Positions 3,213 to 53,985 of a stretch of 64,000 bases of DNA are shown piece by piece (position 1 is the stretch's first letter; the number at the start of each line of letters is the position of its first letter). This DNA comes from Macrostomum lignano (Eukaryota). Under the pieces are notes generated by a model. That model searched no databases, had not been told where the DNA came from, and saw nothing but the letters and a program-made list of their open reading frames with translations. Location: contig NIVC01000353.1 of NCBI GenBank assembly GCA_002269645.1, positions 558,001 to 622,000 on the forward strand, given 5' to 3'. Made by a program: the position numbers and the translations under genes.

Positions 3213-4541
3213 CATGTATTTGAATAACAAAACAAGTATAGCGACGCGTTTACATGTACAATACTCATCTTTTATTATATTTCGTCTCGTCTGTGCCTTT
3301 GGTGGCCACCAATTGAGTCGTCTTTTATAGCTTTCGCGCTTTTTTGTATATTTTGAACGTTTTCGCATATGGTTTTTGGTTGGCCTGGATCCTAGCGCGC
3401 AGCTCTCAGTCATTTAGTTCCATGTTCGTTGACTTGCCCTAGGAATGGCGTCTTTCATTCCCGCACTGTAAAAGAAGTCGAGCACAAGCACAGTATTTGT
3501 GTACAGCCTAATCTGAAAATGCAAGTGAGCACACATTTGTGCGCATGTATGCATTGGTAGATGTACTTGCACAAGGGTTAAGTGAAAAATTCCCTGGAAA
3601 TAGCAGAGAGGCTATAAAGTAACATCTGAGGTAACACGTTTACAGGTAGCGCGTGTATTATATGTATATCACAACTTCTTAAAGTTAACTGCTCAAAGTA
3701 TTATTTTCGTATCAAATTAGTCATAAAATCGAGTGTAAGAGATAGCTAGATCTTATATTTTCTAACCATAGATCCGATTGAGACAGCCTTCGCAGTTATC
3801 TCAGTGGAAGGGAATTTTTGTACGATGGAGCTGAAAATCTATTCATTTGGAGTTTGACCATAAACAAAATATTCACTTCAAGTTCGTGCTAATTGCTATG
3901 ACTGTGTGTTTGTAGTAGACAAAAGAGTTCAGCCACCTATAGATGCTGAGTTCGGATCAAAGCAGAGCCAGTGCCACTTCATCATGGCATGCCAACGGCA
4001 AGGCAATTAGGCAAAACGGCAGCGCAGACCTTCGATGAGGTTCGCCATGCCTTTGGTGTTCATGCTCTTGGCCGCACCCGATTTTTTGAGCATCTCCGCG
4101 ACTCGCTGCTGGTGTCACCTGTGTCACCCTTCACCGTTTCCTGTTGTTTCTCAGTTTCAAATTTCAACCAAATCAGACGAAAATTTCCATAATGGCAGGC
4201 TTTAGTCCGAAAATTTTGCAGCATCCCTCCCTTGTAATTCAGACATGCATGCAAATAAGTTAAATAAAATGCTATTCAATCGAACTAAGAATGGTGCATG
4301 CACTGCAGAGACTACTGACGAAATTGAGTTCAGTAGTAGTTGACAACTTTGTTGTCGCGAGTTGCATTTTTTTCACATTAACTTTTAATGTCCACATACG
4401 AGTACGTGGTTAATGAGTGGCTTATCTTGTGTATATATGAGTGTGACTCTAAAGAAGACCAATTTTTTTGAATTAGTTACTTATGCATTGAAATAACGTC
4501 CATCTATCTAAATAAAAACAGCATATTTTACACATTGCAGT

Positions 4542-7500
4542 ATGCAGCGTCCGAGGGGCGCCGCCTCAGGAGTGCGACGACAAGCCACCAGCAGTCCACA
4601 GGAACTCTTCAGCGTGCAGATTACTGGCCTGCCACCCGGCGTGTCCAGTCAGAGCCTAGTCGATCGGTTCCGACAGTCGGCAGGTCAGTTCGTGATTCTT
4701 CCCGAGCCCAAGCAGCGGGACAAGACTGCCTGGTGCGCTTATCTAAATGGACTCACGGAAAGCGAGGCAGAAAGTTTTCAGGAAAGATGGAATAATAAAA
4801 CATTTCCCGGTGTAAAGCACCCTATAGGATGCAAAACAAGCTCGTCAAAATTGAAGGGAAGTGACAATAATAAAGGCAAGGCCACCCAACCGCAGCCTTT
4901 GATATACACCGTGGAATTATCCGGACTTCCGCCAAATGCATCGACCAAGTTTCTGGCCGCGACATTCAAGCAGAGCGCCGAGAAATTTGTGGTGCTCCCA
5001 GAGTCGAAGCAGCGGGACAAGAATGCTTGGTGCGCTTATCTAAATGACCTTTCCGAGTCTGAGGCACACAAATTTACACGGAAGTATGACAGTTTCAAAA
5101 TAGGCAATAACAAATTTGTAGTGAAGTGTAAACTGATTTTCAAAGCTGACCGTCGTACTGAAGATCGTTCTAGATTGCATGGAGACACACTACGCCAGCA
5201 AACTGAGAAGCTCGGCGCCGAGGCCTCAAGCTCGCAGTCTTCCGTGAGCACTACCCAGAGTGAGACTACCAATCATGATAAAGGCATTTTATGCAAGTAC
5301 AATATTTTGGGCACATGTAAATTTGACAATGACTGTAAGCACATTCATATGTCTTGTCCGATGGAAGAAGATTGCGACGATGATGAGTGTTGCCTGGGTC
5401 ACCCTGCGAACGTTAAAACGCAGATTGGTCGTAGCGTGGGTCGCAGACTGGTCTTGTGCAATCTCTTTCGATTCGGAGCTTGTCGATACGAATCAGAATG
5501 CCGCTTCCAGCACTTAGACTGTCCGTTATCCGAGTTATGCGAGGATTCCTGCTGCTTTTTTGGGCACCCACAAGGCTGGGGAAGCGATTTCTCTGATCCA
5601 AACGAGTGCTCTGTGGATTGCGACCAGTACGACTGCACGAAGAGCCACCCAGTTGGTCGCACAAAGCGCTGTCAATTCGGCGATAAGTGCACCAAATTTG
5701 AGTGCAGCTTCCTGCACTCCGAGAAGCGTCAGGCTTGCGAATTCGCCGAGGACTGTCAGGATTTCGACTGTCCAAAGTTGCACCCAGCATCTCGTGAGAA
5801 TCCTTGCGAAGAAGGAGCCAAGTGCCTGAAATTTGACTGCAAAAAACTGCACCCAGCTTCTAGAGAGCTATGCGAGAAGGGAAAGCTGTGCACTGAGTAT
5901 GAGTGCGAGAAACTGCACGAAGCTGGTAGACGTAAAAAATGCAAGCGGAGAGATCGTTGCAAGCTGCCCTTCTGTCCATGGCTTCATCCGAAAAACCGGA
6001 GCAGGCAATTTTGCGATTGGGGCGAGTCGTGCGACGACTTCAATTGCGCATTGGTGCATCCGCCTGGTCGATGCAGTCCCTGCAAGTACGGAGACCGGTG
6101 TTGGAATCACATTTGCGAATGCCTACATCCCGAGGCTTGGAACCCTTGCCCCAACGGTCTAGCCTGTCGCGATGTCGCTTGCGATTGCTCGCACTCTCCG
6201 AGACGCCCCAAACCGTGTACTCAAGGAAGCGACTGCAGGAACAGAGATTGTGCAGGTTTACACCCAGGTATGAGTAGCGTTTCGAAGGCGCCGCTTCAGA
6301 GAAGCTCAGCGCTTAAATCGGATCACCAGCGAAGAATTGACAGAGAAGCGAACCGCTTGCCAGTACTGAACTATCGAGAACAGTTCCTTGAACGGCTTCA
6401 AAATGAAAAAGTTCTGATTGTAAGGGCAGAGACAGGAAGTGGAAAGACCACCCAGCTGCCGCAGTACGCAGCGGAGTGCTTCGGAGGCCTTGTTATCTGC
6501 ACACAGCCTCGCGTGATGGCGGCGGTCTCGATTGCGCATCGAGTGGCCCAAGAATTCGACGGATGCGATGTCGGAGAGTCAGTCGGGTACAAAGTCGGTG
6601 GCGAGAACAGTGCACCAGGCTCTGGCATAATGTTCATGACAGAGTCGTGTCTCATTCGGTATTGCCAAAGCAATGAATCATTGGACAATGTGTCAGTGCT
6701 AATCGTCGATGAAGCTCACGAGCGATCGCTGAATGTTGACATTGTTCTTGGACTTGCCAAGCTCATTCGCATCAAGAGACCTGACAATTTCTATGTTGTG
6801 ATAGCATCGGCCACGATCGATCCACAGTTGTTTCGAGATTTCTTCAACTGCGGCGTCCTTGACATTCCAGGAAGAATGTACGATGTCTCACTGCAGTACA
6901 TTCCTCCGGCTTTTGATTCAAACCCGGATGTGTTTATCAAAAGTCATCTGGTGCCAAGTCTGATTAAAGCGCTGCGAGACCACAGCGACGGTTATGCGCT
7001 CGTCTTTCTGCCCGGAGAGCGGGAAATCCAGCAGGCCATCAAGGCGTTTCAGCAGCAGCAGACGGAAGACAACTGCGTGGCACTGCCTCTGTACGGGTCT
7101 CTTCCTCGGGAGGAGCAGGTCAAGGTTCTGGACTTCAAGCCGAGTCAAGACTCCGATCGCTTAGTGGTGTTTTGCACTAATGTTGCTGAGACGTCACTGA
7201 CAATCAACGGAGTCAGGTTGGTGGTCGACTCCGGTCTGGCGAAGGAGTCACGCTTTGACGCAAAGAGGCGCATCACAGTGTTGGAGCTGCGGCAGATTTC
7301 GCAGTCAGCCGCCAACCAGAGAAAGGGTCGAGCGGGACGAACTGCACCAGGTCACTGTGTTCGGCTGTACTCTGAGGACGTTTTAAAGAGCGCTGAGTTT
7401 GTTCCCGAAATTCTGCGGTCCTCGTTGGATCTGGTCGTTCTGCTGTTGATCAAACTAAAGTTAAAGCCGCTCGAGTTTCCATTTCTGGACAAGCCAAATG

Positions 7501-10500
7501 AAGAAATGCTGATTCACTCGTACCAAACTTTGATGGATCTTGGATGCCTGTCCGGAGTTGAGTCGCTGTCAAATGCAGGTGAACTGTTTGCAGAACTCGG
7601 GCTCGATCCACGTTTGAGTGCTTTCATTGTCAGGGCCCACCAGCCCTTCGGTCAGTTAGAATTGGCGGTTACGGTTGCCTGCATCCTCACAGCCCCTGGC
7701 AGTATATTCTTCCTTGGACGCGACAAGGAGAAGAAAGAGGGACTGCAGAAAAGAGCATTAGAAGCATTTGCTCACGAAAGCGACATTCTCTACGAAGTCA
7801 GTGTCTATGATTCGTGGTCTAACGCCGGAAATTGATCAACGGAAGGTGCAAAAGCTGCGGAAAAGTGGCAAAAAAGTTCCAGAATAGTTGTAGGTCATGT
7901 CGGGTTGGACACAGCAACTCAAACAGGCTCAATAACAAGGTCATGGAGCACATTGAGAAGTCGCGAACCTCTTTCTTGAAGGCTATAAAGAAAAGTAAAT
8001 GGTACTTAGAGCTTCAAAAGGTTGAGAGCAGCTATGAAGACCCAATTCAAGCTGTTGGAAGCTGTCTCGAGCAGGTGATTCCGGAACAGGTGACATGTCT
8101 GTTGGTAAAGCATCTGCCGTCAGAGGGCATGAAGATTGTTGACTCAAATATCCGAGCTAGGATTTCGAACACATCGGTGTTTGCACAACGCCCCCAGGAC
8201 TGTGAGTACTTCGTTGCAGTACGAGTTAGGCAGATGGTGTCCGGTATGTACATCGTGGATGGGCTGCACCCACTCAAAGATCCGACGACTGTGTCTGATA
8301 GAAGGTCGCATCCTTTAGAAAAGATATTTACGGAGGCCAATGCGAGCTCGAACTTGTTTAAGACAGTCAATTCGAAAATCAATGAAGAATCGTCACAGAT
8401 CTCGGAAGAACAACGAAGGTGGATTGTACTGTCGCACAATGCGGATGAAGCAAGCATCGATGTCTACGCAAGAGCTTCGGAAAGTTCCGAACTTCGTTCC
8501 AAGCTGAAGTCTTTAATTGACAATTCGAAGCTGACATATTTACAAGAACAACATGTGCTTGAAACGAAGGGGTTCAGAGCTACATTTCTATGTGGCCTTC
8601 AAGTAAAAGAGGTATATATTTGTACTTCGAATCGTACTGAGAAAGAAGTGCCATCATCGAAGAACGAAGTTGCCACAGACTCAGCTGAAAGTGACAAAGG
8701 ACTGGCTCAACTTCTGATATCCGCTCCCAGCGGCTTTGAAGAGGAGACTATTCGAGCACACAGTGACTCGATTGCAAAGATCCATCACACCAATAAGCGC
8801 AGACGGCGCCAGGAAAATTTTAAAGTCTTAATTTCGAATATGCCAGCAAATTGGACAGAGTCTGATGTGAAAGGTCTCATTAGGAAATCAGGACGTTTGA
8901 ACACCGTAGACTCGATTCGCATTTTGTCACGTGCTCCAGCTCCACCGGGAATCGGGGCTTCGAGGGCGCTTTTAACACTAAACAGTGAAACAGAGCGCGA
9001 CAATCTGATGAAATCATTGAGTACAGTTTTGTGCAACATCGGACCGTTTTCTATTAGTCTTAATAGTAAAAAGAACGGCGGAACCTTCGTTAAACAGGTT
9101 TCACCTGAAATAAAGCCTTGGGAAGATAAAACTACTCGTACAACTATTCCGGAACTATTTTTGTCAAGTTTAGCGAATCAAAACATGCAGTCGAATTTTA
9201 CAACAAGATTCGTGCAGGTTCAATCGCTGGCTGCTCTGCAGAATGGACTGAATCTGTTTTCATCAGCCATCCTGACCTTTTTCCGGACCTAAACAGCCTC
9301 ATTGAGCGGTCTGGCGATCCCACTGTAAAGAGTGCGAGCGTTCCGAAGCCTGACAAAACATTAGAAATCCGACTGTCCGGTCCGCAGCATGACAAGATAA
9401 AATTGGTAGCGAACAAGCTCCGAAGTCTGTTCTCCTCAATAACTATTCGGCACGTATCCAACAAAGAGAAAACACTTTTCTACGAAATCAAGAAGACTGG
9501 TCTGTTCGATGCCTGGGCCAAGGAACTCAATTTGGTGTGCGAATTCCGAGACGATTGGAACTTCCGGGTATTTGGTTCGAAAGTAAGCCAAGGCTCTCTC
9601 ATGCGAAAAATTGCTGACGAGTTCACGAAAATCGAGAGCCGCTACCGTCTGATACCTCTGAATGCTGCGACTGCCCAGCTGTTACGAAATGGGCTTGCCG
9701 GAGACTCCAAATTGAAGGCGCTGCAACGAAAATGGGACGAACGTTGCTTCATCAAGTTTCTGTTCCACACCTCGGAGATTGAGCTATTTGCTAGAAAAGA
9801 TTCTTCGGTTCTTTCAGATTGCGAGAAAGAGGTGAACGATCTCGTTGCTGAACTTGGAAGCAAAAATAAACTTAGCCAAAAGACGTGCGTTATCTGCAGA
9901 TCAAAGGCAGCAGTCGAAAATTTCTTCATATGCGGACACCCGTACTGCAAGTGCATTGAAAACTGGCTCCAAAGCGTCTCTGCAGCCTCAATCTGCTGTC
10001 CGAAATGCCAGACACCAATCACCATAGGAGAAATTCGCAAACTCACTGGTGACAACTTTGAGAAGCTTGCAATACGTCAGGTTGCTCAGCATGTGGCTCA
10101 GGATCCTTCAATGAAACTTGCTCGCTGTATCATTAAAGACTGCCATGGATTCGTTAATAAAGGCTCGTACGAAAGTTGCGCTTGCTGTGAACACTGGGTG
10201 TGTGTTGACTGCAAGGTTGCAGACGATGTAATGCATAGAGGTTTGAGCTGCTCAGAGTTCAAAAAAGCATCTACAGATAAGGAACCAGTTTCTCGGCTGA
10301 TTAAAGCAGCAGAAGTCTATGTCAGACAGAACTGGCCTGCCGACATGCCACCGATCTGTGCGATCGACGTCAACCCTGGACTGCTTAGCAATCCTCCAAT
10401 TCCCGCGTACAAAACTTTTCACCGCGGCTTGTTGTCACTGAATCGGGGCATATTGCACGAGTCAGACGGTATCTTCGCCTTTCACGGAAGCAGCAGTGAG

Positions 10501-11325
10501 GCACTGAGACAAATCTGCCACTCGGGATTCGATCCTAAAAGGAGGTCAGGCCAAGCTTGCGGCCCGGGAGAGTATTTCGGAGTGACTCCCAGCATCTCTA
10601 GAGGTTACTCGAGAAACTGCGGCGCGATGATCGTCGCTTTTCTCTTGAACGGAGGTCCGATTACACACAGACAAGGCTTTTGCTATGTGGTTAAAAACCC
10701 AACAGACGGCTCAAAGTCTTTTAATTTGCCTGTCTTAGTGGTGTACTTTGACTCATCAACTCCTCGATTGGACTTCATTAAGCCAGTAGCCAACCAGTCT
10801 CAAATATCCGAATCATTTGAAAACGACAACTGGCGATCTCCGTTTCGGTGGCACTGGCAGAAAGATGGCGGCGGATTTGAACCCTACACGGATGAATTTA
10901 ATCGCTTGCTTGAATCGCAATACGATGCGTACAGAATGCACAGCGGACCGGCGCAGTTCACCACACCGCCTATTAGGCGTTACATAGACGACACTCCGCA
11001 ACCGTACACTGTGAACTTCTCGGCTAACACACAGAGGAACGCGAAAACTGGTTACGTTCGGTCTATCCAACGTCAGAAAGTGGACATCAACGTCAGCGTC
11101 AGCACTACTTGGCAGTACCAAAACGAGAACGGCATCTGGCAGCCATTTGAAAGCTTAGTACAGCGTCAAATTCAGCAGGCATATGTAGCCTACACGAGTG
11201 GCTCTGGCAGCTGCAAAGCGAGAGTCCAGTTTCCAGGGCGGCCGGAAACCTACGAGCTGGACTTCCTTCAAGGCCAGCAGACCAACTTGCAGAGCGGAAC
11301 AAAGCGTCCCATTAGAAAAAACTGA
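4542..11325 (+). CDS. Multidomain RRM-CCCH-DEAH helicase-RING/IBR-PARP-WWE protein, copy 1 (2,261 aa after repairing two 1-bp deletions)
   Basis: ORFs 4542-7835, 7832-9292 and 9403-11325 are collinear with copy 2. Helicase motifs are intact: ETGSGKTTQ (6429), TQPR, DEAH (6708), SAT, FLPG, TNVAETSLT, QRKGRAGR. There are 14 CCCH fingers (5292-6263), RING (9886) plus IBR, PARP HGS (10483) and GEYF (10573), and two WWE domains. Frameshifts are at A-run 7829-7831 and T-run 9158-9162. Length 6784+2 is divisible by 3. Confidence 0.9.
4605..5140 (+). other. Two tandem RRM-like repeats (copy 1)
   Basis: Internal repeat VQITGLPP...KQRDKTAWCAYLNGL / VELSGLPP...KQRDKNAWCAYLNDL resembles degenerate RNP2/RNP1 motifs. 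Boundaries are approximate. Confidence 0.6.
5292..6263 (+). other. Array of 14 CCCH zinc fingers (copy 1; copy 2 at 20282-21253)
   Basis: Two C-x7-C-x5-C-x3-H fingers, eleven C-x5-C-x4-C-x3-H (Nab2/ZC3H14-like spacing) and one C-x3-C-x4-C-x3-H, counted from the translation. Confidence 0.9.
9886..10260 (+). other. RING1-like plus IBR zinc domains (copy 1; copy 2 starts at 24865)
   Basis: CVIC-x11-CGHPYCKC...CPKC, followed by C-x4-C...CACC...CVDC...HRGLSC. No RING2/Rcat follows. Confidence 0.75.
10300..10750 (+). other. ADP-ribosyltransferase (PARP catalytic) domain (copy 1)
   Basis: AFHGSSSEALRQICHSGFDP...GQA(C/Y)GPGEYF...SISRGY...FCYVV...LPVLVVYF matches the PARP/ARTD signature order. Boundaries are approximate. 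Confidence 0.85.
10843..11322 (+). other. Tandem WWE domains (copy 1; copy 2 from 25822)
   Basis: FRWHWQKDGGGFEPYTDEFNRLLESQY...YTVNFSANTQRN...VRSIQR and TWQYQNENGIWQPF...YELDFLQGQQTN...KRPIRK. Confidence 0.85.
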
Positions 11326-12555
11326 CGTTTAATCGTTGAGACTGTAATTTTTGTGAGTGGTCAGTTGATTTTAATCGATTTTAATCGCAATCAACGGTGG
11401 TGGAGGCGGCACATTTCTCTTTTGTCTGGTTTTGCTGCACGTGAGTTATACTTAATTATTTATTCAATAATTTTTAAGACTGATTATTTATATGATATGG
11501 CAGTTTACCTTTTTTCCCATTTTTTAGCAAAACGAGATACCCAATTTATAGACATCTCAATATTATATTATTCTACCTTAGAATTTAGAACTTAGGTATT
11601 TCAGAACACCATTTAAGTTTCCATTTAAATGTTGCATTAAAAGTCTAATTTGAGTTGGAATTTAGCCAATTTAGCTATAGTCAATCGAGTTTGAGAAACA
11701 ATACGCTGTCTAAATTATTGTACTGCCGGAGGTGAATAGGATGTTGGCTTGTCAAAATAAGTCTGGAAAGGTGTAATAATATGTAAACAACAGCTCCGCT
11801 GTATGATTTTCACGTACAATACGAAATACGATATAGATACTTGTAAAATAGTCTGAAAAGTTTTGACGAGCCTCTAGCTGGTGCTGCTGAATTCGATTTT
11901 TTTAAATAGCAAAAGTTTTTTAAAGATTGAATTAACGAATAGTGGAGGTGTCTATAATTGGTGTCATACGCTCGTATTGCTACGCAAAAAAAACTAAAAA
12001 ACTAACAATTTAAATAAGACAAAATCTTTTTTCACGCGACTTTATTCTTTCACTTCTATTTAAACTTTATTTTACCTAACCAGAGCTGGTTTCGTTATTC
12101 GTAATTTATTTTAATTAGTTCGATAAGCTAACCAAGTTTTTTCTTTGCGGTAGTCCTACTATTGATATTAGTTTAGAATTTTCGTAGTAGTACTAATACA
12201 TAAAACCGATTATTATTTCATTGAATTCAACGTTTCTAGTGAAGTTCCGATTCAAAGAAGGAAAAATCATCCTTCCAATTTAACATGTAATTAGTAATGT
12301 TTTCAATTTTAAAAAAACCTATAGCTACTCCATTAACTATTTATATCGATCTATTTTCTACTATATTTAATCTGACTAATAAATACATAAACTCAAAATC
12401 AGTTACTAAATATACTATTTATAAATTTTGGCCTCTAAGCCTTACGGGCGCTGACGGTATCAAAATTATCGGGCTTTAAAAAACCGAAAAAAAGGATTTT
12501 TCAAAAGGAGCTGTCGTCTTTCGGCTTTATCCAGCAGCAGCGACCATATAGATCA

Positions 12556-13279
12556 TGTCTAGGTCGTGTCTGCATGGAGGTCGTGTCTAGGTCGTGTCTG
12601 CATGGAGGTCGTGTCTAGGTCGTGTCTGCATGGAGGTCGTGTCTAGGTCGTGTCTGCATGGAGGTCGTGTCTAGGTCGTGTCTGCATGGAGGTCGTGTCT
12701 AGGTCGTGTCTGCATGGAGGTCGTGTCTAGGTCGTGTCTGCATTGAGGTCGTGTCTAGGTCGTGTCTGCATGGAGGTCGTGTCTAGGTCGTGTCTGCATG
12801 GAGGTCGTGTCTAGGTCGTGTCTGAATTGAGGTCGTGTCTAGGTCGTGTCTGCATGGAGGTCGTGTCTAGGTCGTGTCTGCATGGAGGTCGTGTCTAGGT
12901 CGTGTCTGCATGGAGGTCGTGTCTAGGTCGTGTCTGCATGGAGGTCGTGTCTGCATGGAGGTCGTGTCTAGGTCGTGTCTGCATGGAGGTCGTGTCTAGG
13001 TCGTGTCTGCATGGAGGTCGTGTCTAGGTCGTGTCTGCATGGAGGTCGTGTCTAGGTCGTGTCTGCATGGAGGTCGTGTCTAGGTCGTGTCTGCATGGAG
13101 GTCGTGTCTAGGTCGTGTCTGCATGGAGGTCGTGTCTAGGTCGTGTCTGCATGGAGGTCGTGTCTAGGTCGTGTCTGCATGGAGGTCGTGTCTAGGTCGT
13201 GTCTGCATGGAGGTCGTGTCTAGGTCGTGTCTGCATGGAGGTCGTGTCTAGGTCGTGTCTGCATTGAGGTCGTGTCTAG
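12556..13279. repeat. 28-bp minisatellite (GTCGTGTCTAG GTCGTGTCTGCATGGAG), ~26 copies
   Basis: Period 28 read directly. The paralogous array is at 27593-28410. Confidence 0.95.
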
Positions 13280-13844
13280 TTCGCTGCTGCACTATAAAAA
13301 CTGCGCGTCATCTGTAGCTACATGGTTGCTACAAGAGAATTAAGTTGTTTTGGTTAATAGCGCGCTGAAGCGAGTATACTTTTTGTCTTAAAATATGCAT
13401 GTAGATTGGTGGTCTTACTAGCAGCGTACAGAGCTGTCAATGTACTCGGCAGATCGGAAAGGTAACGAAGGAAAAAAACAACTACAACGATGTAATAACT
13501 CTCCCTAAAACGGAGTACTTCCAGGATTAAAAGAAAGAATCAACAGGAAGGAAATGTTGCACCACGTACATGGGTAACAGCAGTATCATGGTGTTGCTTT
13601 TCTAGAATCTAATTGTCAGCGGACGACTGCAGATGATGTAAAGTATTGTATAGACGGCTGGGAGGCAAATCTAACAGGGCGAGAACTTCTTAAACGAGTA
13701 TTAGCGGCTGGAGAATCATTAGACGGAATAGTAGGCTCTGGGAAGGGTCTCCGGTGGCGGCGGCGGTAACCTATGGCCCAGACGGGGACGTACAATGCTT
13801 TGTGGAAATCAATAATTATTTCTTCAGAGCGTTAAAATACAAGG

Positions 13845-15520: not shown

Positions 15521-17577
15521 TTATTTAAGAAACAATTTGAACGAATATTCAGTATATATAGATAGTTGAGAGTAATAAGAGTAGTTGAATTGAGTTTTTA
15601 ATTGATGGTTTAAAACTTGTACATAGTAATCAATTTTTTATACAGTATTGGTTGGGTAAAGTGCATATATCAGTTTCAAGCCAGTCCGGTCATTGACAAA
15701 TCAGCTAAAAAATGCTGAGTTGACGGCTAGCCCCACCCATCGCAAGTTGGTTATTTAACGTGGGCTGTTTGGTCTTAATGTACAGGGCTTCTAATAGGCA
15801 GAGCATGTGATCTCTATTACAAAAATCAATAGCCTTTATCATTTCGTGTGGTTCAGCCTCACAACAGGAATTGCAGGTTAGCAGGTGTTCGTTAATAGCA
15901 GAGTTTTTAGCCAGTGCTCTCTGACCCTCGTGTACAAGTGTCGTTTAGTTTTTCCTATGTAGGAGATGCTCTGGTCCTCAGAGCAAACAAATTTATACAC
16001 GACACCAGCCGCGAGAGGACGTGGAACACTGGATTTCAACTTGCAGACGAACTTAGCAATCTTTTCGGTGCGAAACACAACACGGATTTGAGTGTTTAAG
16101 TCTTTACGTAGCAGCTTTTCTAACTTCTTTTTAAACTCTATAGAACAAACATCAAAATAAGGCAAAGTGATCAAGGGACATTCAGAGGTGGAATCACGAA
16201 CTTTCATCCGAGTAGGTTCAGTCAGTTTGTCATTGAGAAAAGAGTTGACAATTTTCATCACAAAGTTCTTAGGATAGCCATTGTAGCTGAGCAGATTGGT
16301 GAGGATTTCAACTTCGTTGTGGAAAAGTCTCCAAGAGCTGCAAGTGGAAAAAGCCCAGTGAAGAAAGCCACGAATCAATCCAGTTTTCCATTGTCTAGGG
16401 CACAAGGCGTCAAACCTAAGCATAAGCCCGGTAAAGCTAGGTTTCCTATACACGCTGGTCGAAATAGTTTCATCAGTGGCGTCAACGTCAATGTCTAAGA
16501 AAGGAAGTCTTCTGCCTCCCCCCTCCACCGTGAATTTGATATTCTCATGAGTAGAATTGATTAACTTAAAAAACTCATCCTTCTTAGCTTCGTCCTCAAA
16601 GATCGCAAACGTGTCATCGACGTAGCGTTTGTAGAAGTGAGGCGCACAAGGGAGGGCCATCCAGTCCTTTTCCCAGTGAGCCATGCACAAATTAGCGAGG
16701 GTTGGGGCGAGAGGGCTGCCCATGGCACACCCATCAATCTGTCTGTAATATTTGTCCCGAAAAAGAAAGATGCCGGAGGTGGCGAATTTGAGCATCTTCT
16801 TAAAAGTGGCTTTAGAGAAAGGAGGTGGATTGGTTTTTTCATACACAAGATCAGCAGCCAGCTCAATGGTGAATTCGAGAGGGATGTTGGTGAACAGAGA
16901 AACAACATCAAAGCTATAAAGCCTGTCAGTTTGATTAATCGTGGTATTGCTGAGGCTCTCAATAAACTGTTTATTGGATCCCACACAGTGCTCAGAAGGA
17001 ATAACAGGTTTAATTAAATTGTCAAGGAATTTGGCTTGCTCATACTCCGAAGTGTTGATCATCGAAACAATTGGTCTTAAAGGATGACCATCTTTATGGA
17101 CTTTGCACAGACCATACAGTTGTCCAGGTTGGCTACCACTTGGGACAATCACCTAAAAGATCTCAGGGCTCACATGCGGCTTGACATAAGTTCTCAAAAA
17201 ATTCTGAAGAGATCTTTCATTTTTCAGAATCGGGTGGGTCATAGTGACTTTATCGGCGGTACCAAGGCATTGAAACTTGAGTTTGTCCTGGACCACTTTC
17301 TCAAGTTTCTCAAAATAATCATTACTGTCTAAGACAGTAACGCCATAGCCTTTATCGTAACCAACGATCTTGATATTGTCATTGTTCTTGAGACCGTTCA
17401 TAGTCTGGTGCATAAGCCTATTGCTTTTCTTGTTAACGTATCCTTGAGCTCTACAGATAAACTTGATTACTATGTACAAGTTTTAAACCATCAATTAAAA
17501 ACTCAATTCAACTACTCTTGTTACTCTCAACTATCTATATATACTGAATATTCGTTCAAATTGTTTCTTAAATAAAA

Positions 17578-19303: not shown

Positions 19304-19498
19304 TAAGACACTTAACTCTGCATTGCTTCAGTTCACCCAGCTGTAAAATGGATGCCAGCATTAGCTGGGATAATTGAGGGTATGTGTGGCGACCCCCAGT
19401 CCTTGGACTGAACAGCCGTACGCAGCCTTCAATAGCGGCGGCTGAGCTGTCGGTTGCACATCTGCCCATTGGACAGGTGTAATCAATTATTATAATAA
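19304..19498 (+). mobile_element. 5'-truncated SINE-like insertion with 10-bp TSD
   Basis: Absent from copy 1. Flanked by TTTAAACATT at 19294-19303 and 19499-19508, and ends in an ATT/TAA-rich tail. AAGACACTTAACTC..CACCCAGCTGTAAAATGG resembles, from memory, conserved SINE central domains. Confidence 0.65.
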
Positions 19499-19516
19499 TT
19501 TAAACATTGCAGTATA

Positions 19517-22500
19517 ATGCAGCGTCCGAGGGGCGCCGCCTCAGGAGTGCGACGACAAGCCACCAGCAGTCCACAGGAACTCTTCAGCGTGCAGATTACT
19601 GGCCTGCCACCCGGCGTGTCCAGTCAGAGTCTAGTCGATCGGTTCCAGCAGTCTGCAGGTCAGTTCGTGATTCCTCCCGAGCCCAAGCAGCGAGACAAGA
19701 CTGCCTGGTGCGCTTATCTAAATGGACTCACAGAAAACCAGGCTGAAACCTTTCAGGAAAGATGGAATAATAAAATATTTCCCGGCGGACAACATCCTAT
19801 AAGATGCAAAACAAGCTCGTCAAAATTGAAGGGAAGTGAAAATATTCAAGGCAAGGCCACCCAACCGCAGCCTATGATTTACAACGTGGAATTATCCGGA
19901 CTTCCGCCAAATGCATCGAACAAGTTTCTGGCCGCGACATTCAAGCAGAGCGCCGAAAAATTTGAGGTGCTCCCAGAACCGAAGCAGCGTGACAAGACTG
20001 CCTGGTGCGCTTATTTAAATGACGTTCCCGAGTCTGAGGCACACAGATTTATACAAAAATACGATAATTTCAAGATAGGCAATAACAAGTTTGTAGTGAG
20101 GTGTAGGCTCATTTTCAAAGCTGACCGTCGGACTACTGAAGATCGTTCTAGAGTGCGATCTAGAGTGCATGGTGACTCGCTACGGCAGCAAACTGAGAAG
20201 CTCGGCGCCGAGGCCTCAAGCTCGCAGTCTTCCGTGAGCACTACCCATAGTGAGACTACCAATCAGGATAAAGGCATTTTGTGCAAGTACAATATTCTGG
20301 GCACATGTAAATTTGACAATGACTGTAAGCACATTCATATGTCTTGTCCAATGGAAGAGGATTGCGACGATGATGAGTGTTGCCTGGGTCACCCTGCGAA
20401 CGTTAAAACGCAGATTGGTCGTAGCGTGGGTCGCAGACTGGTATTGTGCAATCTCTTTCGATTCGGAGCTTGTCGATACGAATCAGAATGCCGCTTCAAA
20501 CACTTAGACTGTCCGTTAGCAGAATTATGCGAGGATTCCTGCTGCTTTTTTGGGCACCCGCAGGGCTGGGGAAGCGATTTCTCTGATCCAAACGAATGCT
20601 CTGTGGATTGCGACCAGTACGACTGCACGAAGAGCCACCCAGTTGGTCGCACAAAGCGCTGTCAATTCGGCGATAAGTGCACCAAATTTGAGTGCAGCTT
20701 CCTGCACTCCGAGAAGCGTCAGGCTTGCGAATCTGCCGGCGACTGTCAGGATTTCGACTGTTCAAAGTTGCACCCGGAATCTCGTGAGGAGCCTTGTGTG
20801 AAAGGAGCCAAGTGCCTGGAATTTCATTGCCAAAAACTGCACCCAGCTTCTAGAGAGCTATGCGACAAGGGAAAGCTGTGCACTGAATATGCGTGCGATA
20901 AACTGCACGAAGCTGGCAGACGTAAAAAATGCAAGTGGAGAGATCGTTGCAAGCTGCCCTTTTGTCCATGGCTTCATCCAATAAACCGGAGCAAACAATT
21001 TTGCGACCGGGGCGATTCGTGCGACGACTTCGACTGCGCATTGGTGCATCCGCCTGGTCGATGCAGTCCCTGCAAGTATGGAGAACGGTGTTGGAATCAC
21101 ATTTGCGAATGCCTACACCCCGAGGCTTGGAACCCTTGTCCCAACGGTCTGGGCTGTCGCGATGTCACTTGCGATTGCTCGCACTCTCCGAGACGCCCCA
21201 AACCGTGTACGCAGGGGAGCGACTGCAGGAACAGAGATTGTGCAGGTTTACACCCAGGTATGAGTAGCGTTTCGAACGCGCCTCTTCAGAGAAGCTCAGC
21301 GCTTAAATCGGATCACCAGCGAAGAATTGACAGAGAAGCGAACCGCTTGCCAGTACTGAACTATCGAGAACAGTTCCTTGAACGGCTTCAAACTGAAAAA
21401 GTTCTGATTGTAAGGGCAGAGACAGGAAGTGGAAAGACCACCCAGCTGCCGCAGTACGCAGCAGAGTGCTTCGGAGGCCTTGTTATCTGCACACAGCCTC
21501 GCGTGATGGCGGCGGTCTCGATTGCGCATCGAGTGGCCCAAGAATTTGACGGATGCGATGTCGGAGAGTCAGTCGGGTACAAAGTCGGTGGCGAGAACAG
21601 TGCACCAGGCTCTGGCATAATGTTCATGACAGAGTCGTGTCTCATTCGGTATTGCCAAAGCAATGAATCATTGGACAATGTGTCAGTGCTAATCGTCGAT
21701 GAAGCTCACGAGCGATCGCTGAATGTTGACATTGTTCTTGGACTTGCCAAGCTCATTCGCATCAAGAGACCTGACAATTTCTATGTTGTGATAGCATCGG
21801 CCACGATCGATCCACAGTTGTTTCGAGATTTCTTCAACTGCGGCGTCCTTGACATTCCAGGAAGAATGTACGATGTCTCACTGCAGTACATTCCTCCGGC
21901 TTTTGATTCAAACCCGGATGTGTTTATCAAAAGTCATCTGGTGCCAAGTCTGATTAAAGCGCTGCGAGACCACAGCGACGGTTATGCGCTCGTCTTTCTG
22001 CCCGGAGAGCGAGAAATCCAGCAGGCCATCAAGGCGTTTCAGCAGCAGCAGACGGAAGACAACTGCGTGGCGCTGCCTCTGTACGGGTCTCTTCCTCGGG
22101 AGGAACAGGTCAAGGTTCTGGACTTCAAGCCGAGTCAAGACTCCGATCGCTTGGTGGTGTTCTGCACTAATGTTGCTGAGACGTCACTGACAATCAACGG
22201 AGTCAGGTTGGTGGTCGACTCCGGTCTGGCGAAGGAGTCACGCTTTGACGCAAAGAGGCGCATCACAGTGTTGGAGCTGCGGCAGATTTCGCAGTCAGCC
22301 GCCAACCAGAGAAAGGGTCGAGCGGGACGAACTGCACCAGGTCACTGTGTTCGGCTGTACTCTGAGGACGTTTTAAAGAGCGCTGAGTTTGTTCCCGAAA
22401 TTCTGCGGTCCTCGTTGGATCTGGTCGTTCTGCTGTTGATCAAACTAAAGTTAAAGCCGCTCGAGTTTCCATTTCTGGACAAGCCAAATGAAGAAATGCT

Positions 22501-25500
22501 GATTCACTCGTACCAAACTTTGATGGATCTTGGATGCCTGTCCGGAGTTGAGTCGCTGTCAAATGCAGGTGAACTGTTTGCAGAACTCGGGCTCGATCCA
22601 CGTTTGAGTGCTTTCATAGTCAGGGCTCATGAGCACTTCGGTCAGTTAGAATTGGCGGTTACGGTTGCCTGCATCCTGACAGCCCCTGGCAGTATATTCT
22701 TCCTTGGACGCGACAAGGAGAAGAAAGAGGGACTGCAGAAAAGAGCATTAGAAGCATTTTCTCACGAAAGCGACATTCTCTACGAAGTCAGTGTCTTTGA
22801 TTCGTGGTCTAACGCCGGAAAATTGATTAATGGGAAGTGCAAAAACTGCGGAAAAGTGGCTAGAAATTTTCAGAACAGCTGTAGATCATGCCGGGTTGGA
22901 CACAGCAACTCAAACAGGCTCAATAACAAGGTCATGGAGCACATAGAGAAGACGCGAACCTCTTTTTTGAAGACTATAAAGAAAAGCAAATGGTTCTTAG
23001 AGCTTCAAAAGGTTGAGAGCAGCTGTGAAGACACAATCCAAGTTGTTGGAAGCTGTCTCGAGCAAGTGATTCCAGAACAGGTGACATGTCTGTTGGTAAA
23101 GCGTCTGCCGTCAGAGGGCATAAAGATTGTTGACTCAAATATCCGAGCTAGAATTTCGAACACATCGGTGTTTGCACAACGCCCCAGGACTGTGAGTACT
23201 TCGTTGCAGTACGAGTTAGGCAGATGGTGTCCGGTATGTACATCGTGGATGGGTTGCACCCACTCAAAGATCCAACGACTGTGTCTGATAGAAGGTCGCA
23301 TCCTTTAGAAAAGATATTTACGGAGGCCAATGCGAGCTCGAACTTGTTAAAGGCAGTCAATTCGAAAATCAAGGATGAATCGTCACAGATCTCGGAAGAA
23401 CAACGAAGGTGGATTGTACTGTCGCACAATGCGGATGAAGCAAGCATCGATGTCTACGCAAGAGCTTCGGAAAGTTCCGAACTTCGTTCCAAGCTGAAGT
23501 CTTTAATTGACAAATCAAAACTGACGTATTTACAAGAACAGCATATGCTTGAAACGAAGGGTTTCAGAGCAACATTTCAAGGTGGCCTTCAAGTAAAAGA
23601 GGTGCATATTTGTACTTTGAATCGTACTGATAGCGAAGTGTCATCATCGAATAACGAAGGTGCCACAGACTCAGCTGAAAGTGACAACGGACTGGCTCAA
23701 CTTCTGGTATCCGCTCCCTGCGGCTTTGAAGAGGAAACTATTCGAGCACACAGTGACTCGACTGCAAAGATCCATCACACTAATCAGCGCAGACGGCGTC
23801 AGGAAAAGTTTAAAGTCTTCATTTCGAATATGCCAGCAAACTGGAAAGAATCTGATGTGCAAGATCTCATTAGGAAATCAGAATGTTTGAACGCTGTAGT
23901 CCCGATTCGCATTTTCCCACCTGCTCAGCCGGGAATCGGGACTTCGAGAGCGCTTTTAACACTAAACAGTGAAACAGAGCGCGACAGTCTGATTAAATCT
24001 TTGAGCACAGTTTTGTGCAACATCGGACCGTTTCCTATTAGTCTCATTAGTAAGAAAAACGGCGAAACCTTCGTTAAACAGGTTTCACCTGAAATAAAGC
24101 CTTGCGAAGATAAAACTCCATCTATTCCAGAACTATTTTTTGTTAAGTTTAACGAATCAAAGCATGCAGTCGAATTTTACAACAAGATCCGTGCAGGTTC
24201 AATTGTTGGATGCTCTGCGGAATGGACTGAATCTGTTTTCATCAGCCATCCTGACCTTTTTCCGGACCTAAACAGCCTCATTGAGCAGTCTGGTGATCCC
24301 ACTGTAAAGAGTACGAGCGTTCCGAAGCCTGACAAAACGTTAGAAATCCGACTGTCCGGTCCGCAGCATGACAAGATAAAATTGGTAGCGAACAAGCTCC
24401 GAAGTCTGTTCTCCCCAATAACTATTCGGCACGTATCCAACAAAGAGAAAACACTTTTCTACGAAATCAAGAAGACTGGTCTGTTCGATGCCTGGGCCAA
24501 GGAACTCAATTTGGTGTGCGAATTCCGAGACGACTGGAACTTCCGGGTATTTGGCTCAAAAGTAAGCCAAGGCTCTCTCATGCGAAAAATCGCTGACGAG
24601 TTCACGAAACTCGAGAGCCGCTATCGCCTGATACCCCTGAATGCTGCAACTACCCAGCTGTTCCGAAATGGACTCGCCGGAGACTCAAAATTAAAGGCGC
24701 TGCAACGGAAATGGGACCAACGTTGCTTCATCAAGTTTCTGTTCCACACCTCGGAGATTGAGCTATTTGCTAGAAAAGATTCTTCGGTTCTTTCAGATTG
24801 CGAAAAAGAGGTGAACGATCTCGTTGCTGAACTCGGAAGCAAAAATATACTTGGCCAAAAGACGTGCGTTGTCTGCAGATCTAAGTCAGCAGTCGAAAAT
24901 TTCTTCATATGCGGACACCCGTACTGCAAGTGCATTGACAACTGGCTACAAAGCGTCTCTGCAGCCTCAATCTGTTGTCCGAAATGCCAGACACCAATTA
25001 CGATAAGAGAAATTCGCAAACTCACCGGCGACAACTTTGAAAAGCTTGCAGTACGTCAAGTTGCTCATTATGTGGCTCAGGATCCTTCAATGAAAATTGC
25101 TAGATGCATCATTAAAGACTGCAATGGATTCGTTAATAAAGGCTCGTACAAAAGTTGCGCTTGCTGTAAACACTGGGTGTGTGTTGACTGCAAGGTTGCA
25201 GACGATGTAATGCATAGAGGTTTGAGCTGCTCAGAGTTCAAAAAAGCATCTACAGATAAGGAACCAGTTTCTCGGCTGATTAAAGCAGCAGAAGTCTATG
25301 TCAGACAGAACTGGCCTGCCGACATGCCACCGATCCGTGCGATCGACGTCAACCCTGGACTGCTTAGCAATCCTCCAAGTCCCGCGTACAAAACTTTTCA
25401 CCGCGGCTTGTTGTCACTGAATCGGGGCATATTGCACGAGTCCGACGGTATCTTCGCCTTTCACGGAAGCAGCAGTGAGGCACTGAGACAAATCTGCCAC

Positions 25501-26304
25501 TCGGGATTCGATCCTAAAAGGAGGTCGGGCCAAGCTTACGGCCCGGGAGAGTATTTCGGACTGACTCCCAGCATCTCTAGAGGTTACTCGAGAAACTGCG
25601 GCGCGATGATCGTCGCTTTTCTCTTGAACGGAGGTCCGATTACACACAGACCAGGCTTTTGCTATGTGGTTAAAAACCCAACAGACGGTTCAATGTCTTT
25701 TAACTTGCCCGTCTTAGTGGTGTACTTTGACTCATCAACTCCTCGATTGGACTTCATTAAGCCAGTAGCCAACCAGTCTCAAATATCCGAACCATTTGAA
25801 AACGACAACTGGCGATCTCCGTTTCGGTGGCACTGGCAGAAAGATGGCGGCAGATTTGAACCCTACACGGATGAATTTAATCGCTTGCTTGAATCGCAAT
25901 ACGATGCGTACAGAATGCACAGCGGACCGGCGCAGTTCACCACACCGCCAATTAGGCGTTACATAGACGACACTCCGCAACCGTACACTGTGAACTTCTC
26001 GGCTAACACACAGAGGAACGTGAAAACTGGTTACGTTCGATCTATCCAACGCCAACAAGTGGACATCAACGTCAGCGTCAGCACTACTTGGCAGTACCAA
26101 AACGAGAACGGCATCTGGCAGCCATTTGAAAGCTTAGTACAGCGTCAAATTCAGCAGGCATATGTAGCCTACACGAGTGGCTCTGGCAGCTGCAAAGCGA
26201 GAGTCCAGTTTCCAGGGCGGCCAGAAACCTACGAGCTGGACTTCCTTCAAGGCCAGCAGACCAACTTGCAGAGCGGAACAAAGCGTCCCATTAGAAAAAA
26301 CTGA
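19517..26304 (+). CDS. Multidomain RRM-CCCH-DEAH helicase-RING/IBR-PARP-WWE protein, copy 2 (2,262 aa after repairing one 1-bp deletion)
   Basis: ORFs 19517-23308 and 23224-26304. The frameshift is at C-run 23182-23185 (4 C versus 5 C at 8191-8195 in copy 1). Walker A at 21419, DEAH at 21698, RING at 24865, PARP His at 25462. Length 6788+1 is divisible by 3. Confidence 0.92.
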
Positions 26305-27592
26305 CGTTTAATCGTTGAGACTGTAATTTTTGTGAGTGGTCAGTTGATTTTAATCGATTTTAATCGCAATCAACGGTGGTGGAGGCGGCACATTTCTCTT
26401 TTGTCTGGTTTTGCTGCACGTGAGTTATACTTAATTATTTATTCAATAATTTTTAAGACTGATTATTTATATGATATGGCAGTTTACCTTTTTTCCCATT
26501 TTTTAGCAAAACGAGATACCCAATTTATAGACATCTCAATATTATATTATTCTACCTTAGAATTTAGAACTTAGGTATTTCAGAACACCATTTAAGTTTC
26601 CATTTAAATGTTGCATTAAAAGTCTAATTTGAGTTGGAATTTTGCCAATTTAGCTATAGTCAATCGAGTTTGAGAAACAATACACTGTCTAAATTATTGT
26701 ACTGCCGGAGGTGAATAGGATGTTGGCTTGTCGAAATAAGTCTGGAAAGGTGTAATAATATGTAAACAACAGCTCCGCTGTATGATTTTCACGTACAATA
26801 CGAAATACGATATAGATACTTGTAAAATAGTCTGAAAAGTTTTGACGAGCCTCTGGTGCTGCTGAATTCGATTTTTTTTAAATAGCAAAAGTAGATTGAA
26901 TTAACGAATAGTGGAGGTGTCTATAATTGGTGTCATACGCTCGAATTGCTACGCAAAAAAACTAAAAAAACTAACAATTTAAATAAGACAAAATCTTTTT
27001 TCACGCGACTTTATTCTTTCCCTTCTATTTAAACTTTATTTACCTAACCAGAGCTGGTATCGTTATTCGTAATTTATTTTAATTAGTTCGATAAGCTAAC
27101 CAAGTTTTTTCTTTGCGGTAGTCCTACTATTGATATTAGTTTAGAATTTTCGTAGTAGTACTAATACATAAAACCGATTATTATTTCATTGAATTCAACG
27201 TTTCTAGTGAAGTTCCGATTCAAAGAAAGAAAAATCATCCTTCTAATGTAACATGTAATTAGTAATGTTTTCAATTTTAAAAAACCTATAGCTACTCCAT
27301 TAACTATTTATATCGATCTATTTTCTACTATATTTAATCTGACTAATAAATACATGAATTCAAAATCAGTTACTAAATATACTATTTATAAATTTTGGCC
27401 TCTTAGCCTTGGTTTTAGTTTTCAAATCTGAAAAATGATTTTTTGCAATTTTCTTGATGTTTGAGATTGGTGTCAAATAAATGGGCGCTGCCGGTATCAA
27501 AATTTTCGGGCTTTAAAAAACCGAAAAAATGATTTTTCAAAAGGAGCTGTCGTCTTTCGGCTTTATCCAGCAGCAGCGACCATATAGATCGG

Positions 27593-28410
27593 GTCTAGGT
27601 CGTGTCTGCATGGAGGTCGTGTCTAGGTCGTGTCTGCATGGAGGTCGTGTCTAGGTCGTGTCTGCATGGAGGTCGTGTCTAGGTCGTGTCTGCATGGAGG
27701 TCGTGTCTAGGTCGTGTCTGCATGGAGGTCGTGTCTAGGTCGTGTCTGCATGGAGGTCGTGTCTAGGTCGTGTCTGCATGGAGGTCGTGTCTAGGTCGTG
27801 TCTGCATGGAGGTCGTGTCTAGGTCGTGTCTGCATGGAGGTCGTGTCTAGGTCGTGTCTGCATGGAGGTCGTGTCTAGGTCGTGTCTGCATGGAGGTCGT
27901 GTCTAGGTCGTGTCTGCATTGAGGTCGTGTCTAGGTCGTGTCTGCATGGAGGTCGTGTCTAGGTCGTGTCTGCATGGAGGTCGTGTCTAGGTCGTGTCTG
28001 CATGGAGGTCGTGTCTAGGTCGTGTCTGCATGGAGGTCGTGTCTAGGTCGTGTCTGCATTGAGGTCGTGTCTAGGTCGTGTCTGCATGGAGGTCGTGTCT
28101 AGGTCGTGTCTGCATGGAGGTCGTGTCTAGGTCGTGTCTGCATGGAGGTCGTGTCTAGGTCGTGTCTGCATTGAGGTCGTGTCTAGGTCGTGTCTGCATG
28201 GAGGTCGTGTCTAGGTCGTGTCTGCATGGAGGTCGTGTCTAGGTCGTGTCTGCATTGAGGTCGTGTCTAGGTCGTGTCTGCATGGAGGTCGTGTCTAGGT
28301 CGTGTCTGCATTGAGGTCGTGTCTAGGTCGTGTCTGCATGGAGGTCGTGTCTAGGTCGTGTCTGCATTGAGGTCGTGTCTAGGTCGTGTCTGCATTGAGG
28401 TCGTGTCTAG
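27593..28410. repeat. 28-bp minisatellite, ~29 copies (paralog of 12556-13279)
   Basis: Same unit as in duplication unit 1. Confidence 0.95.
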
Positions 28411-28746
28411 TTCGCTGCTGCACTATAAAAACTGCGCGTCATCTGTAGCTACATGGTTGCTACAAGAGAATTAAGTTGTTTTGGTTAATAGCGCTCTGAA
28501 GCGAGTATACTTTTTGTCTTAAAATATGCATGTAGATTGGTGGTCTTACTAGCAGCGTACAGAGCTGTCAATGTACTCGGCAGATTGGAAAGGTAACGAA
28601 GGAAAAAAACAACTACAACGATGTAATAACTCTCCCTAAAACGGAGTACTTCCAGGATTAAAAGAAAGAATCAACAGGAAGGAAATGTTGCACCACGTAC
28701 ATGGGTAACAGCAGTATCATGGTGTTGCTTTTCTAGAATCTAATTG

Positions 28747-30344: not shown

Positions 30345-30835
<491 letters not shown>

Positions 30836-52974: not shown

Positions 52975-53212
52975 GTGAGACGGAGAGACGGGAACATAAA
53001 GCCGCTGCAATCAAAATTATTTACCTTTTTTCGGAGAGAAAATAGCAGCCCGACTGATTTTGCAGCTACAAATGCACTTTTGTTCGCACGCATCAAAATC
53101 TGATCTCTTTGAAACCCGCCCAAAAGCCAGAGAGTATATGAAACAAACAAAGTGGCAGAGTGGCTAAATGCTGAGCATCTATTTGTCTCCTAATAAGCAT
53201 TTAATATTTTCA

Positions 53213-53985
<773 letters not shown>

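Follow-up and report, generated by a model that had tools for sequence, protein, structure and literature searches.

Probable replacement of RING2 by an ADP-ribosyltransferase and paired WWE domains in a RING1-IBR helicase family represented in Macrostomum lignano

We analysed a stretch of 64,000 nucleotides from Macrostomum lignano (contig NIVC01000353.1, positions 558,001 to 622,000; hereafter the window, whose own coordinates are used throughout) that carries two tandem copies of a gene of ~2,260 codons. Within the C-terminal third of this gene lies the front half of an RBR ubiquitin ligase, a RING1 followed by an IBR, joined directly to a compact PARP-type ADP-ribosyltransferase (ART), with a pair of WWE domains behind it. 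The ART and the two WWE domains stand in the place of the RING2 (Rcat) module of RBR ligases and, as both the anatomy of the protein and comparison with its relatives indicate, have very probably replaced it in evolution. As assembled, the first copy is divided into three frames and the second is broken once; we analysed the frame segments one by one throughout, and number residues of the tail within the last frame of copy 1, an open reading frame (ORF) at 9403-11325 (ORF3) that is open from at least 9158. The features of this tail, which ends at a stop codon at 11323-11325, are as follows:

9886..10008, forward strand: RING1 of C3HC4 type with an atypical C5-x1-C6 spacing, identified from the sequence, from ligands invariant in the family and from PDB profile matches to RBR RING1 and other RINGs.
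10024..10101, forward strand: long helix from RING1 to IBR, as in RBR ligases; an AlphaFold2 (AF2) helix at residues 208-233, lying inside the HOIL-1 and HOIP RING1-IBR matches.
10126..10251, forward strand: IBR of C6HC type, identified from the sequence, the RNF31 IBR match and an AF2 predicted local distance difference test (pLDDT) score of 84-95.
10282..10752, forward strand: compact PARP-type ART, identified by Pfam PARP, a PDB profile, Foldseek and conservation over 92 domains.
10483-10485 (H361), 10573-10575 (Y391), 10606-10608 (Y402) and 10681-10683 (C427, third triad position), forward strand: key residues of the ART, from motifs and alignment.
10837..11316, forward strand: tandem WWE domains, an ADP-ribose/iso-ADP-ribose reader fold, found by Pfam WWE (E 1e-25) in two stretches.

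RING1 retains all eight zinc ligands in both copies (C162-x2-C165-x11-C177-x-H179-x2-C182-x1-C184-x14-C199-x2-C202), and the IBR has all eight of its own (C242-x4-C247-x11-C259-x2-C262-x4-C267-x2-C270-x7-H278-x4-C283), beginning with the C-x4-C pair of an IBR and not the C-x2-C of an Rcat. All 16 ligands are invariant in an alignment of 12 sequences that, apart from copy 2, are 25-32% identical to the window protein; Pfam IBR is present in 9 of the 12. A family profile of the RING-IBR unit, compared with the PDB, matched RING1 and IBR of HOIL-1 in a single alignment (E 1.7e-6), as well as the RNF31 IBR (1.3e-6) and the HOIP RBR (7.6e-5). The AF2 model of the RING-IBR segment has a pLDDT of 79 overall and ~90 over the IBR, and Foldseek placed RBR ligases, and nothing else, at ranks 1-13 (E up to 0.8): the HOIL-1/E2-Ub complex (3.9e-4) and HOIP-RBR/UbcH5B~Ub (2.3e-3), then HHARI and RNF216, with parkin and ARIH2 weaker (E 1.9). 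A model of the whole 640-residue tail (mean pLDDT 79.5) returned matches to WWE, PARP and KH domains only.

One alternative is that the two zinc modules are a TRIM-like RING and a B-box, unrelated to RBR ligases. Searched with the single window sequence, phmmer gave only marginal PDB matches, led by the TRIM3 RING-B-box (E 0.026) and followed by the RNF31 IBR (0.03), and Pfam zf-B_box is weakly present in 2 of the 12 aligned members. Profile, Foldseek and hhalign comparisons refute this reading, and we consider it extremely improbable: the profile ranks TRIM2/3 RING-B-box at 5e-3 to 7e-3 against 1e-6 to 1e-4 for HOIL-1, HOIP and RNF31, the Pfam IBR calls and the Foldseek ranking given above point to RBR ligases, and hhalign aligns the region to RBR helicases at E 5.5e-28.

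The short spacing in the 'CGHPYCKC' motif of RING1, noted as atypical in a first-pass annotation of the window, is real; it recurs in 14 family members including the window protein, and 71 have the canonical x2. It is a lineage-specific deletion of one residue, not a trait of the family. Of 85 family members, 81-85 keep the RING1 ligands, ~64 have a hydrophobic or aromatic residue in front of C2, and 46 have a proline after C7. The E2-contact positions are kept to a degree similar to that in Rcat-bearing relatives; this conservation of zinc ligands and E2 contacts, read from sequence, favours retained E2 binding.

No RING2/Rcat separates the IBR from the ART. The last IBR codon ends at 10251, in agreement with the first-pass annotation, which had the RING1-like and IBR motifs ending near 10260. 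In the AF2 secondary structure the first ART helix begins ~10 codons past the IBR, and the catalytic histidine H361 (nt 10483) comes 78 codons after the last IBR cysteine C283, with 77 residues between; the earlier statement that a PARP fold follows within about 75 codons in both copies was accurate, as was its observation that the interval lacks a RING2/Rcat cysteine motif. With a single cysteine in copy 1 and not even one in copy 2, residues 284-360 cannot form a zinc-binding RING2/Rcat, and because the protein ends after its two WWE domains there is no Rcat downstream of the ART either. Homologs, which the annotation had proposed to check for the same replacement, bear it out: none of 79 ART-bearing representatives has an Rcat, and at most three cysteines lie from the last IBR to the ART. 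Since the Rcat cysteine module is found nowhere in the family, its members cannot run the RING/HECT-hybrid thioester relay of RBR ligases, and by domain membership, as far as sequence defines it, the protein is not an RBR ligase in the catalytic sense.

The nearest proteins without an ART are RBR helicases, which carry DEAD, Helicase_C, HA2_C, OB_NTP_bind, KH_DEAH11, RING, IBR and IBR_1 domains and end in a textbook Rcat ('CPxC...EKxxGCNHMxC', read by eye and with a loose pattern); one cluster of them includes the sponge Oscarella. We aligned the ART group to the Rcat-positive RBR set with hhalign, which gave a match of 99.8% probability (E 5.5e-28) over ORF3 residues 33-294, spanning KH, RING1, helix and IBR and stopping ~ten residues past the last IBR cysteine. 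Past this point the groups part: Rcat follows in one, the ART and two WWE domains in the other. That the nearest ART-less relatives have Rcat, and that homology ends at the IBR, supports the domain swap proposed from the window alone. Because the RBR supradomain is universal in eukaryotes, parsimony gives the direction of change as Rcat to ART. Judged from these alignments, the 'Helicase' (DEAH11-like) subfamily of RBR ligases, an ancient group also described as Plant I or DEAH11-DEAH12-like (Marin 2010, PMC2904391), is either the stock from which the family arose or its sister group. The window protein resembles this subfamily in its N-terminal DEAH helicase and in the KH domains before RING1, helix and IBR; it differs in having an ART and two WWE domains in place of Rcat (IBR_1, 'GCNHMxC'), in adding a CCCH array and RRM-like domains at the N-terminus, and in that Pfam detects no HA2 or OB domain.

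The missing module might also be supplied in trans, by a partner such as a paralogous RBR helicase, for a thioester relay between two proteins. Rcat-bearing RBR helicases do coexist in eukaryotes and share the KH-RING1-IBR scaffold, but RBRs are not known to work with an Rcat contributed by another protein, and we regard this arrangement as very unlikely.

The architecture is widespread. A first homolog search returned 27 relatives, among them proteins with precomputed IBR, PARP and WWE domains from the bdelloid rotifer genus Rotaria and the stramenopile Pteridomonas. Of the 3,077 proteins that an exhaustive HMMER search with the RING-IBR profile returned at E<=1e-3, 355 reach E<=1e-10 and 32 reach E<=1e-30, and we annotated the best 144 cluster representatives with hidden Markov models built from the family. 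In at least 79 of these best 144 the ART comes directly after the IBR, typically in the order KH-RING-IBR-ART-WWE. Full-length members run from a helicase at the N-terminus through PARP to WWE, and in two unrelated metagenomic contigs a helicase gene lies immediately upstream on the same strand. Members come from rotifers, Amoebozoa, stramenopiles, Rhizaria and Metamonada, with Mastigamoeba, Pelomyxa, Pedospumella, Chilomastix, Aphanomyces and Paulinella among those named, and the window protein is collinear over its length with the Aphanomyces and Chilomastix proteins. Databases name them 'HrpA-like helicase', 'putative zinc finger' or 'hypothetical protein'. A subgroup (P0148-P0153, P0155, P0172, P0173, P0190 and P0198), which includes the Archamoebae Mastigamoeba balamuthi and Pelomyxa schiedti, has 2-7 tandem IBRs between RING1 and ART, all with a C-x4-C first pair and none Rcat-like. 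The metagenomic contig that carries the closest homolog (L001) also encodes an LCIB-type carbonic anhydrase domain at 1-158, which hints that this contig comes from an algal host.

The ART is recognizable by sequence and by predicted fold. Pfam PARP scores 26.4 bits in copy 1, just below the cut-off of 26.7, and 28.4 in copy 2; the ART profile matched PARP12 in the PDB at 8e-8 and PARP10, PARP14, ZAP/PARP13 and PARP15 at E-values up to 1e-5; and Foldseek matched PARP12, PARP16 and PARP10 (4.5e-4 to 1.1e-3), and also PARP14 and PARP15. Across 92 family ART domains the NAD-binding histidine is kept in 89, the first tyrosine (in 'GEYFG') in 89 and the second in 85, and the third triad position, which we infer from the motif, a predicted strand at 427-430 and the sister PARPs rather than from structural superposition, is cysteine in 75 (C427, 'FCYVVNNP'). 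Sister PARP domains that share the 'KRRSGQAYGPGEYF' signature have leucine, isoleucine or aspartate there. The catalytic glutamate used for chain elongation by poly-ARTs is absent from this motif-assigned position, where cysteine stands instead. An H-Y-C triad without glutamate predicts a mono-ADP-ribosyltransferase; by its motifs the domain belongs to the non-Glu type of the PARP family and looks like an active mono-ART. The loop that leads from the 'LLNG' strand to the third-triad strand is much shorter than in PARP12, with ~10 residues against ~35.

Two further positions in the ART deserve description. The glutamate of 'GEYFG' (E390, 10570-10572), beside the NAD-stacking tyrosine, is present in 89 of the 92 family domains; sister PARPs without RING-IBR also have an equivalent glutamate, and the PARP12 and PARP10 chains have serine or valine. 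In the motif 'SGQAYGPGEYFG', copy 1 has a cysteine (10558-10560), as do a few other members, and copy 2 (25537-25539) and most members have tyrosine.

Behind the ART lies the WWE pair, whose top Foldseek matches are its tandem counterparts in DTX1, ZAP and Drosophila Deltex and which phmmer matched to DTX1 and TRIP12. Both the ART and the WWE domains retain ligand-binding signatures.

Upstream of this tail, the gene encodes a set of predicted RNA-binding and helicase modules, so that the full order is RRM-like, CCCH array, DEAH helicase, middle region, two KH-like domains, RING1, IBR, ART and two WWE domains. The upstream features are:

4620..4811, forward strand: N-terminal RRM-like domain (Pfam RRM_1, E 2.8e-4, aa 27-90 of the first frame).
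5289..6312, forward strand: CCCH-type zinc-finger-like repeat array, with C-x(5-8)-C-x(4-5)-C-x3-H motifs read in the translation.
6378..7343, forward strand: DEAH/HrpA-type helicase core, RecA1 and RecA2 (Pfam DEAD 2.7e-10, Helicase_C 1.3e-12).
9430..9858, forward strand: two KH-like domains directly 5' of RING1 (AF2 pLDDT 74-87; Foldseek matches to IMP3 KH1-2 and FBP KH3-4).

A second RRM-like repeat is visible in the translation after the first, and Pfam zf-CCCH matches the array weakly (E 0.025 in copy 1, 0.0015 in copy 2). The helicase core is 45-54% identical to rotifer and environmental eukaryote helicases and 34% identical to the RBR helicase P0247 (E 6e-76); after the family's own members, the helicase search returned generic HrpA/DHX helicases and did not single out RBR helicases. 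Pfam matched no HA2 or OB domain in the closest helicase homologs, as in the window protein itself, and P0247, P0251 and P0261 have both. The KH-like region (aa 33-150) aligns by hhalign with the pre-RING region of RBR helicases; Pfam KH_DEAH11 has no match in the window protein, lies upstream of the RING in P0247 and falls below the cut-off in P0252. The middle region (7832-9157 in copy 1, 23182-24380 in copy 2), ~450 residues long, has no Pfam match; it holds a zinc-ribbon-like C-x2-C...C-x2-C motif (INGRCKSCGK...CRSCRVGH) and an RRM-like stretch.

The two copies of the gene and the domains of the second are laid out as follows:

4542..11325, forward strand: gene copy 1, ~2,260 codons, introns not evident, three frames as assembled.
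19517..26304, forward strand: gene copy 2, 94.8% identical in nucleotides to copy 1 over the gene, with a frame break at 23182.
24865-24987 (RING1), 25105-25230 (IBR), 25261-25731 (ART) and 25816-26295 (two WWE domains), forward strand: domains of copy 2, from Pfam and alignment to copy 1.

The RING-IBR-ART features of copy 2 (24865-25731) thus lie at +14,979 nt from those of copy 1. The frames of copy 1 break at 7829 and 9158, and these two breaks, together with the one in copy 2, raise the possibility that both copies are pseudogenes or are assembly-damaged and yield no full-length protein. The breaks in copy 1 are single-base differences, and in the alignment of the two copies all three breaks (7829, 9158 and 23182) appear as 1-nt gaps in homopolymer runs (AAA/AAAA, CCCC/CCCCC and TTTTT/TTTTTT), a pattern typical of long-read error; we regard them as probable assembly errors of this homopolymer type. 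No in-frame stops were seen in the frame segments of either copy, and purifying selection is indicated by the ratio of nonsynonymous to synonymous substitution rates (dN/dS) from one copy to the other, which lies at 0.1-0.36 for all domains. With these observations set against the breaks, loss of function at the locus seems improbable.

The tandem duplication unit is ~9.3 kb long (4523-13768 and 19495-28899, 95.4% identity) and begins ~20 nt 5' of the start codon. Inside it, 3' of each gene copy, lies a minisatellite of a 28-bp unit, TGTCTAGGTCGTGTCTGCATGGAGGTCG, at 12556-13291 and 27589-28422. Between the gene copies, an ORF on the reverse strand (15878-17152) has an RVT_1 match (E 6.5e-9) and a weak GIY-YIG match (E 0.007), and by these matches looks like a fragment of a Penelope-like retroelement. 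Farther along, from 30345 to 62841, long minisatellite and microsatellite arrays predominate, with strong strand skew; they include a 25-bp unit repeated 191 times at 41067-46094, a 34-bp unit repeated 85 times at 58503-61410, and (GATA)n and (AGAT)n tracts at 30345-30835 and 53212-53985. The long 'ORFs' of this region are repeat artefacts.

How might such a protein work? On balance we lean towards an RNA helicase whose tail of RING1-IBR, mono-ART and two WWE domains makes it a writer and reader of ADP-ribose that recruits E2~ubiquitin (E2~Ub). The CCCH, RRM, KH and helicase modules would bind RNA and select an RNA or ribonucleoprotein target; the ART would mono-ADP-ribosylate itself or the bound target; the WWE pair would read the mark; and RING1-IBR would dock E2~Ub. 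Ubiquitin would then pass directly from the E2 to the ADP-ribosylated target, in the manner of RNF146, or to a hydroxyl of the ADP-ribose, in the manner of Deltex. The mechanism as a whole, and with it the coupling of ADP-ribosylation to direct discharge of E2~Ub, is possible, and we put it forward tentatively.

Several points weigh against this interpretation. In RBR ligases, E2~Ub on RING1 is kept open and unreactive towards lysine, and a lone RING1 may be a poor direct ligase. On the window proteins Pfam called neither RING nor IBR at E<=0.1; RING1 has low pLDDT in the AF2 models (45-63, with 54-72 over the RING in the model of the RING-IBR segment) and a non-canonical C5-x1-C6 knuckle. The linchpin position after C8, glutamine in the window, is variable both in the ART group and in the Rcat group. 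The direction of domain change comes from parsimony and not from a rooted tree. Finally, frame breaks occur in both copies, and if they are real this locus, unlike the family, would be non-functional.

The main rival explanation, which we judge rather unlikely but take seriously, is that RING1-IBR is a structural or regulatory relic which keeps its zinc fold but has lost its E2 binding; a mere scaffold was also the first-pass annotation's alternative to E2~Ub recruitment. Its present partner might be ubiquitin, RNA or the ART, the last as autoinhibition, and the protein would then be an RNA-guided mono-ART and reader. Without Rcat the original catalytic purpose of RING1 is gone; the linchpin and the helix position of the canonical tryptophan are variable; the low model confidence and atypical spacing of the window RING fit as well; and multiplication of the IBR to 2-7 units in some members suggests a binding or spacer role. 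Against a relic, the eight RING ligands and the hydrophobic residue before C2 have been kept over supergroup-level divergence, as in active RBR relatives, and the dN/dS of RING1-IBR between the copies is 0.28.

A third possibility is that the ART acts on ubiquitin itself, or on E2~Ub bound to RING1-IBR, so that ubiquitin becomes ADP-ribosylated. The ART occupies the place where Rcat receives the ubiquitin C-terminus, and RBR RING1-IBR units bind both E2~Ub and an allosteric ubiquitin, complexes of this kind being the top Foldseek matches of the window model. Precedents are bacterial SidE and CteC, as well as the first proposal made for DTX3L-PARP9 (PMC12687431). The product of PARP9-DTX3L has, however, been re-interpreted as a ubiquitin-ADP-ribose ester made by the DTC domain (PMC12687431), and the tandem WWE and RNA-binding modules better suit the modification of a target, so that we hold ADP-ribosylation of ubiquitin to be quite unlikely.

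Equally doubtful in our view is that the ART takes over the function of Rcat and makes ubiquitin-ADP-ribose conjugates by a route independent of the Deltex DTC and ancient in eukaryotes. Ubiquitin could pass from the RING1-held E2 straight to ADP-ribose or NAD+ in the ART/WWE pocket, or it could pass first to the nearly invariant Cys427, at the site of the PARP catalytic glutamate.

The architecture that we favour, an ADP-ribose writer and reader with an E2-recruiting half-module, combines elements of several known systems. PARP12, PARP7 and ZAP/PARP13 likewise combine CCCH, WWE and the PARP fold; PARP12, PARP10, PARP14 and PARP15 are the best sequence and fold matches of the window ART, and the tandem WWE resembles that of ZAP. 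Unlike these CCCH-WWE-PARPs, the window protein has its ART before its WWE domains, adds the helicase, KH and RING1-IBR, and has cysteine at the third triad position where they have isoleucine, leucine or valine. With Deltex and DTX3L-PARP9 it shares a RING, tandem WWE (DTX1/2/4) or KH/RRM domains (DTX3L) and an NAD+/ADP-ribose-binding catalytic partner, and DTX1 is the best match of its WWE pair in both fold and sequence; by analogy, a route to ubiquitin-ADP-ribose conjugates is plausible. It differs in that its RING is an RBR-type RING1 followed by an IBR and its ART belongs to the same chain, in cis, rather than to a second protein; Pfam finds no DTC domain in the window protein, where IBR and ART follow the RING. 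The protein is not a Deltex, but it may work like one. RNF146 (Iduna) also has RING and WWE in one polypeptide, and in the window protein, too, ADP-ribose reading could gate ubiquitin transfer; RNF146, however, combines a canonical RING with dependence on a writer in trans, tankyrase, whereas the window protein has its writer in cis and an RBR-type RING. Both kinds of coupling have precedent, in that the Deltex RING-DTC ubiquitylates ADP-ribose and RNF146 couples its WWE to its RING (PMC12687431).

Full-text searches of the literature yielded no account of a RING1-IBR-PARP architecture. Two broad surveys of PARP evolution list fusions with U-box, UBCc, UBA and RWD and do not mention fusion with IBR or helicase domains, and a DTX3L-PARP9 preprint does not mention fusions. 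In the literature searched this widespread eukaryotic family is undescribed, and it brings both a new combination of catalytic modules and an H-Y-C triad; it adds to the PARPs a clade, and with it a triad, that the surveys do not list.

Cross-talk between ubiquitin and ADP-ribose, as in Deltex/PARP9, RNF146/tankyrase and RNF114, is a young field that rests almost wholly on vertebrate proteins acting in trans. Here a single polypeptide joins a putative E2-recruiting RBR half-module, a predicted mono-ART, two ADP-ribose readers and an RNA helicase. By the logic of ZAP, PARP12 and DTX3L, one may speculate that in protists and invertebrates it serves in the surveillance of RNA or in defence against viruses. 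Provided that E2~Ub is still bound by RING1, the family would provide a simple system for ubiquitin/ADP-ribose coupling without DTC or Rcat, and would show how an RBR scaffold can be re-purposed through a swap of its catalytic module.

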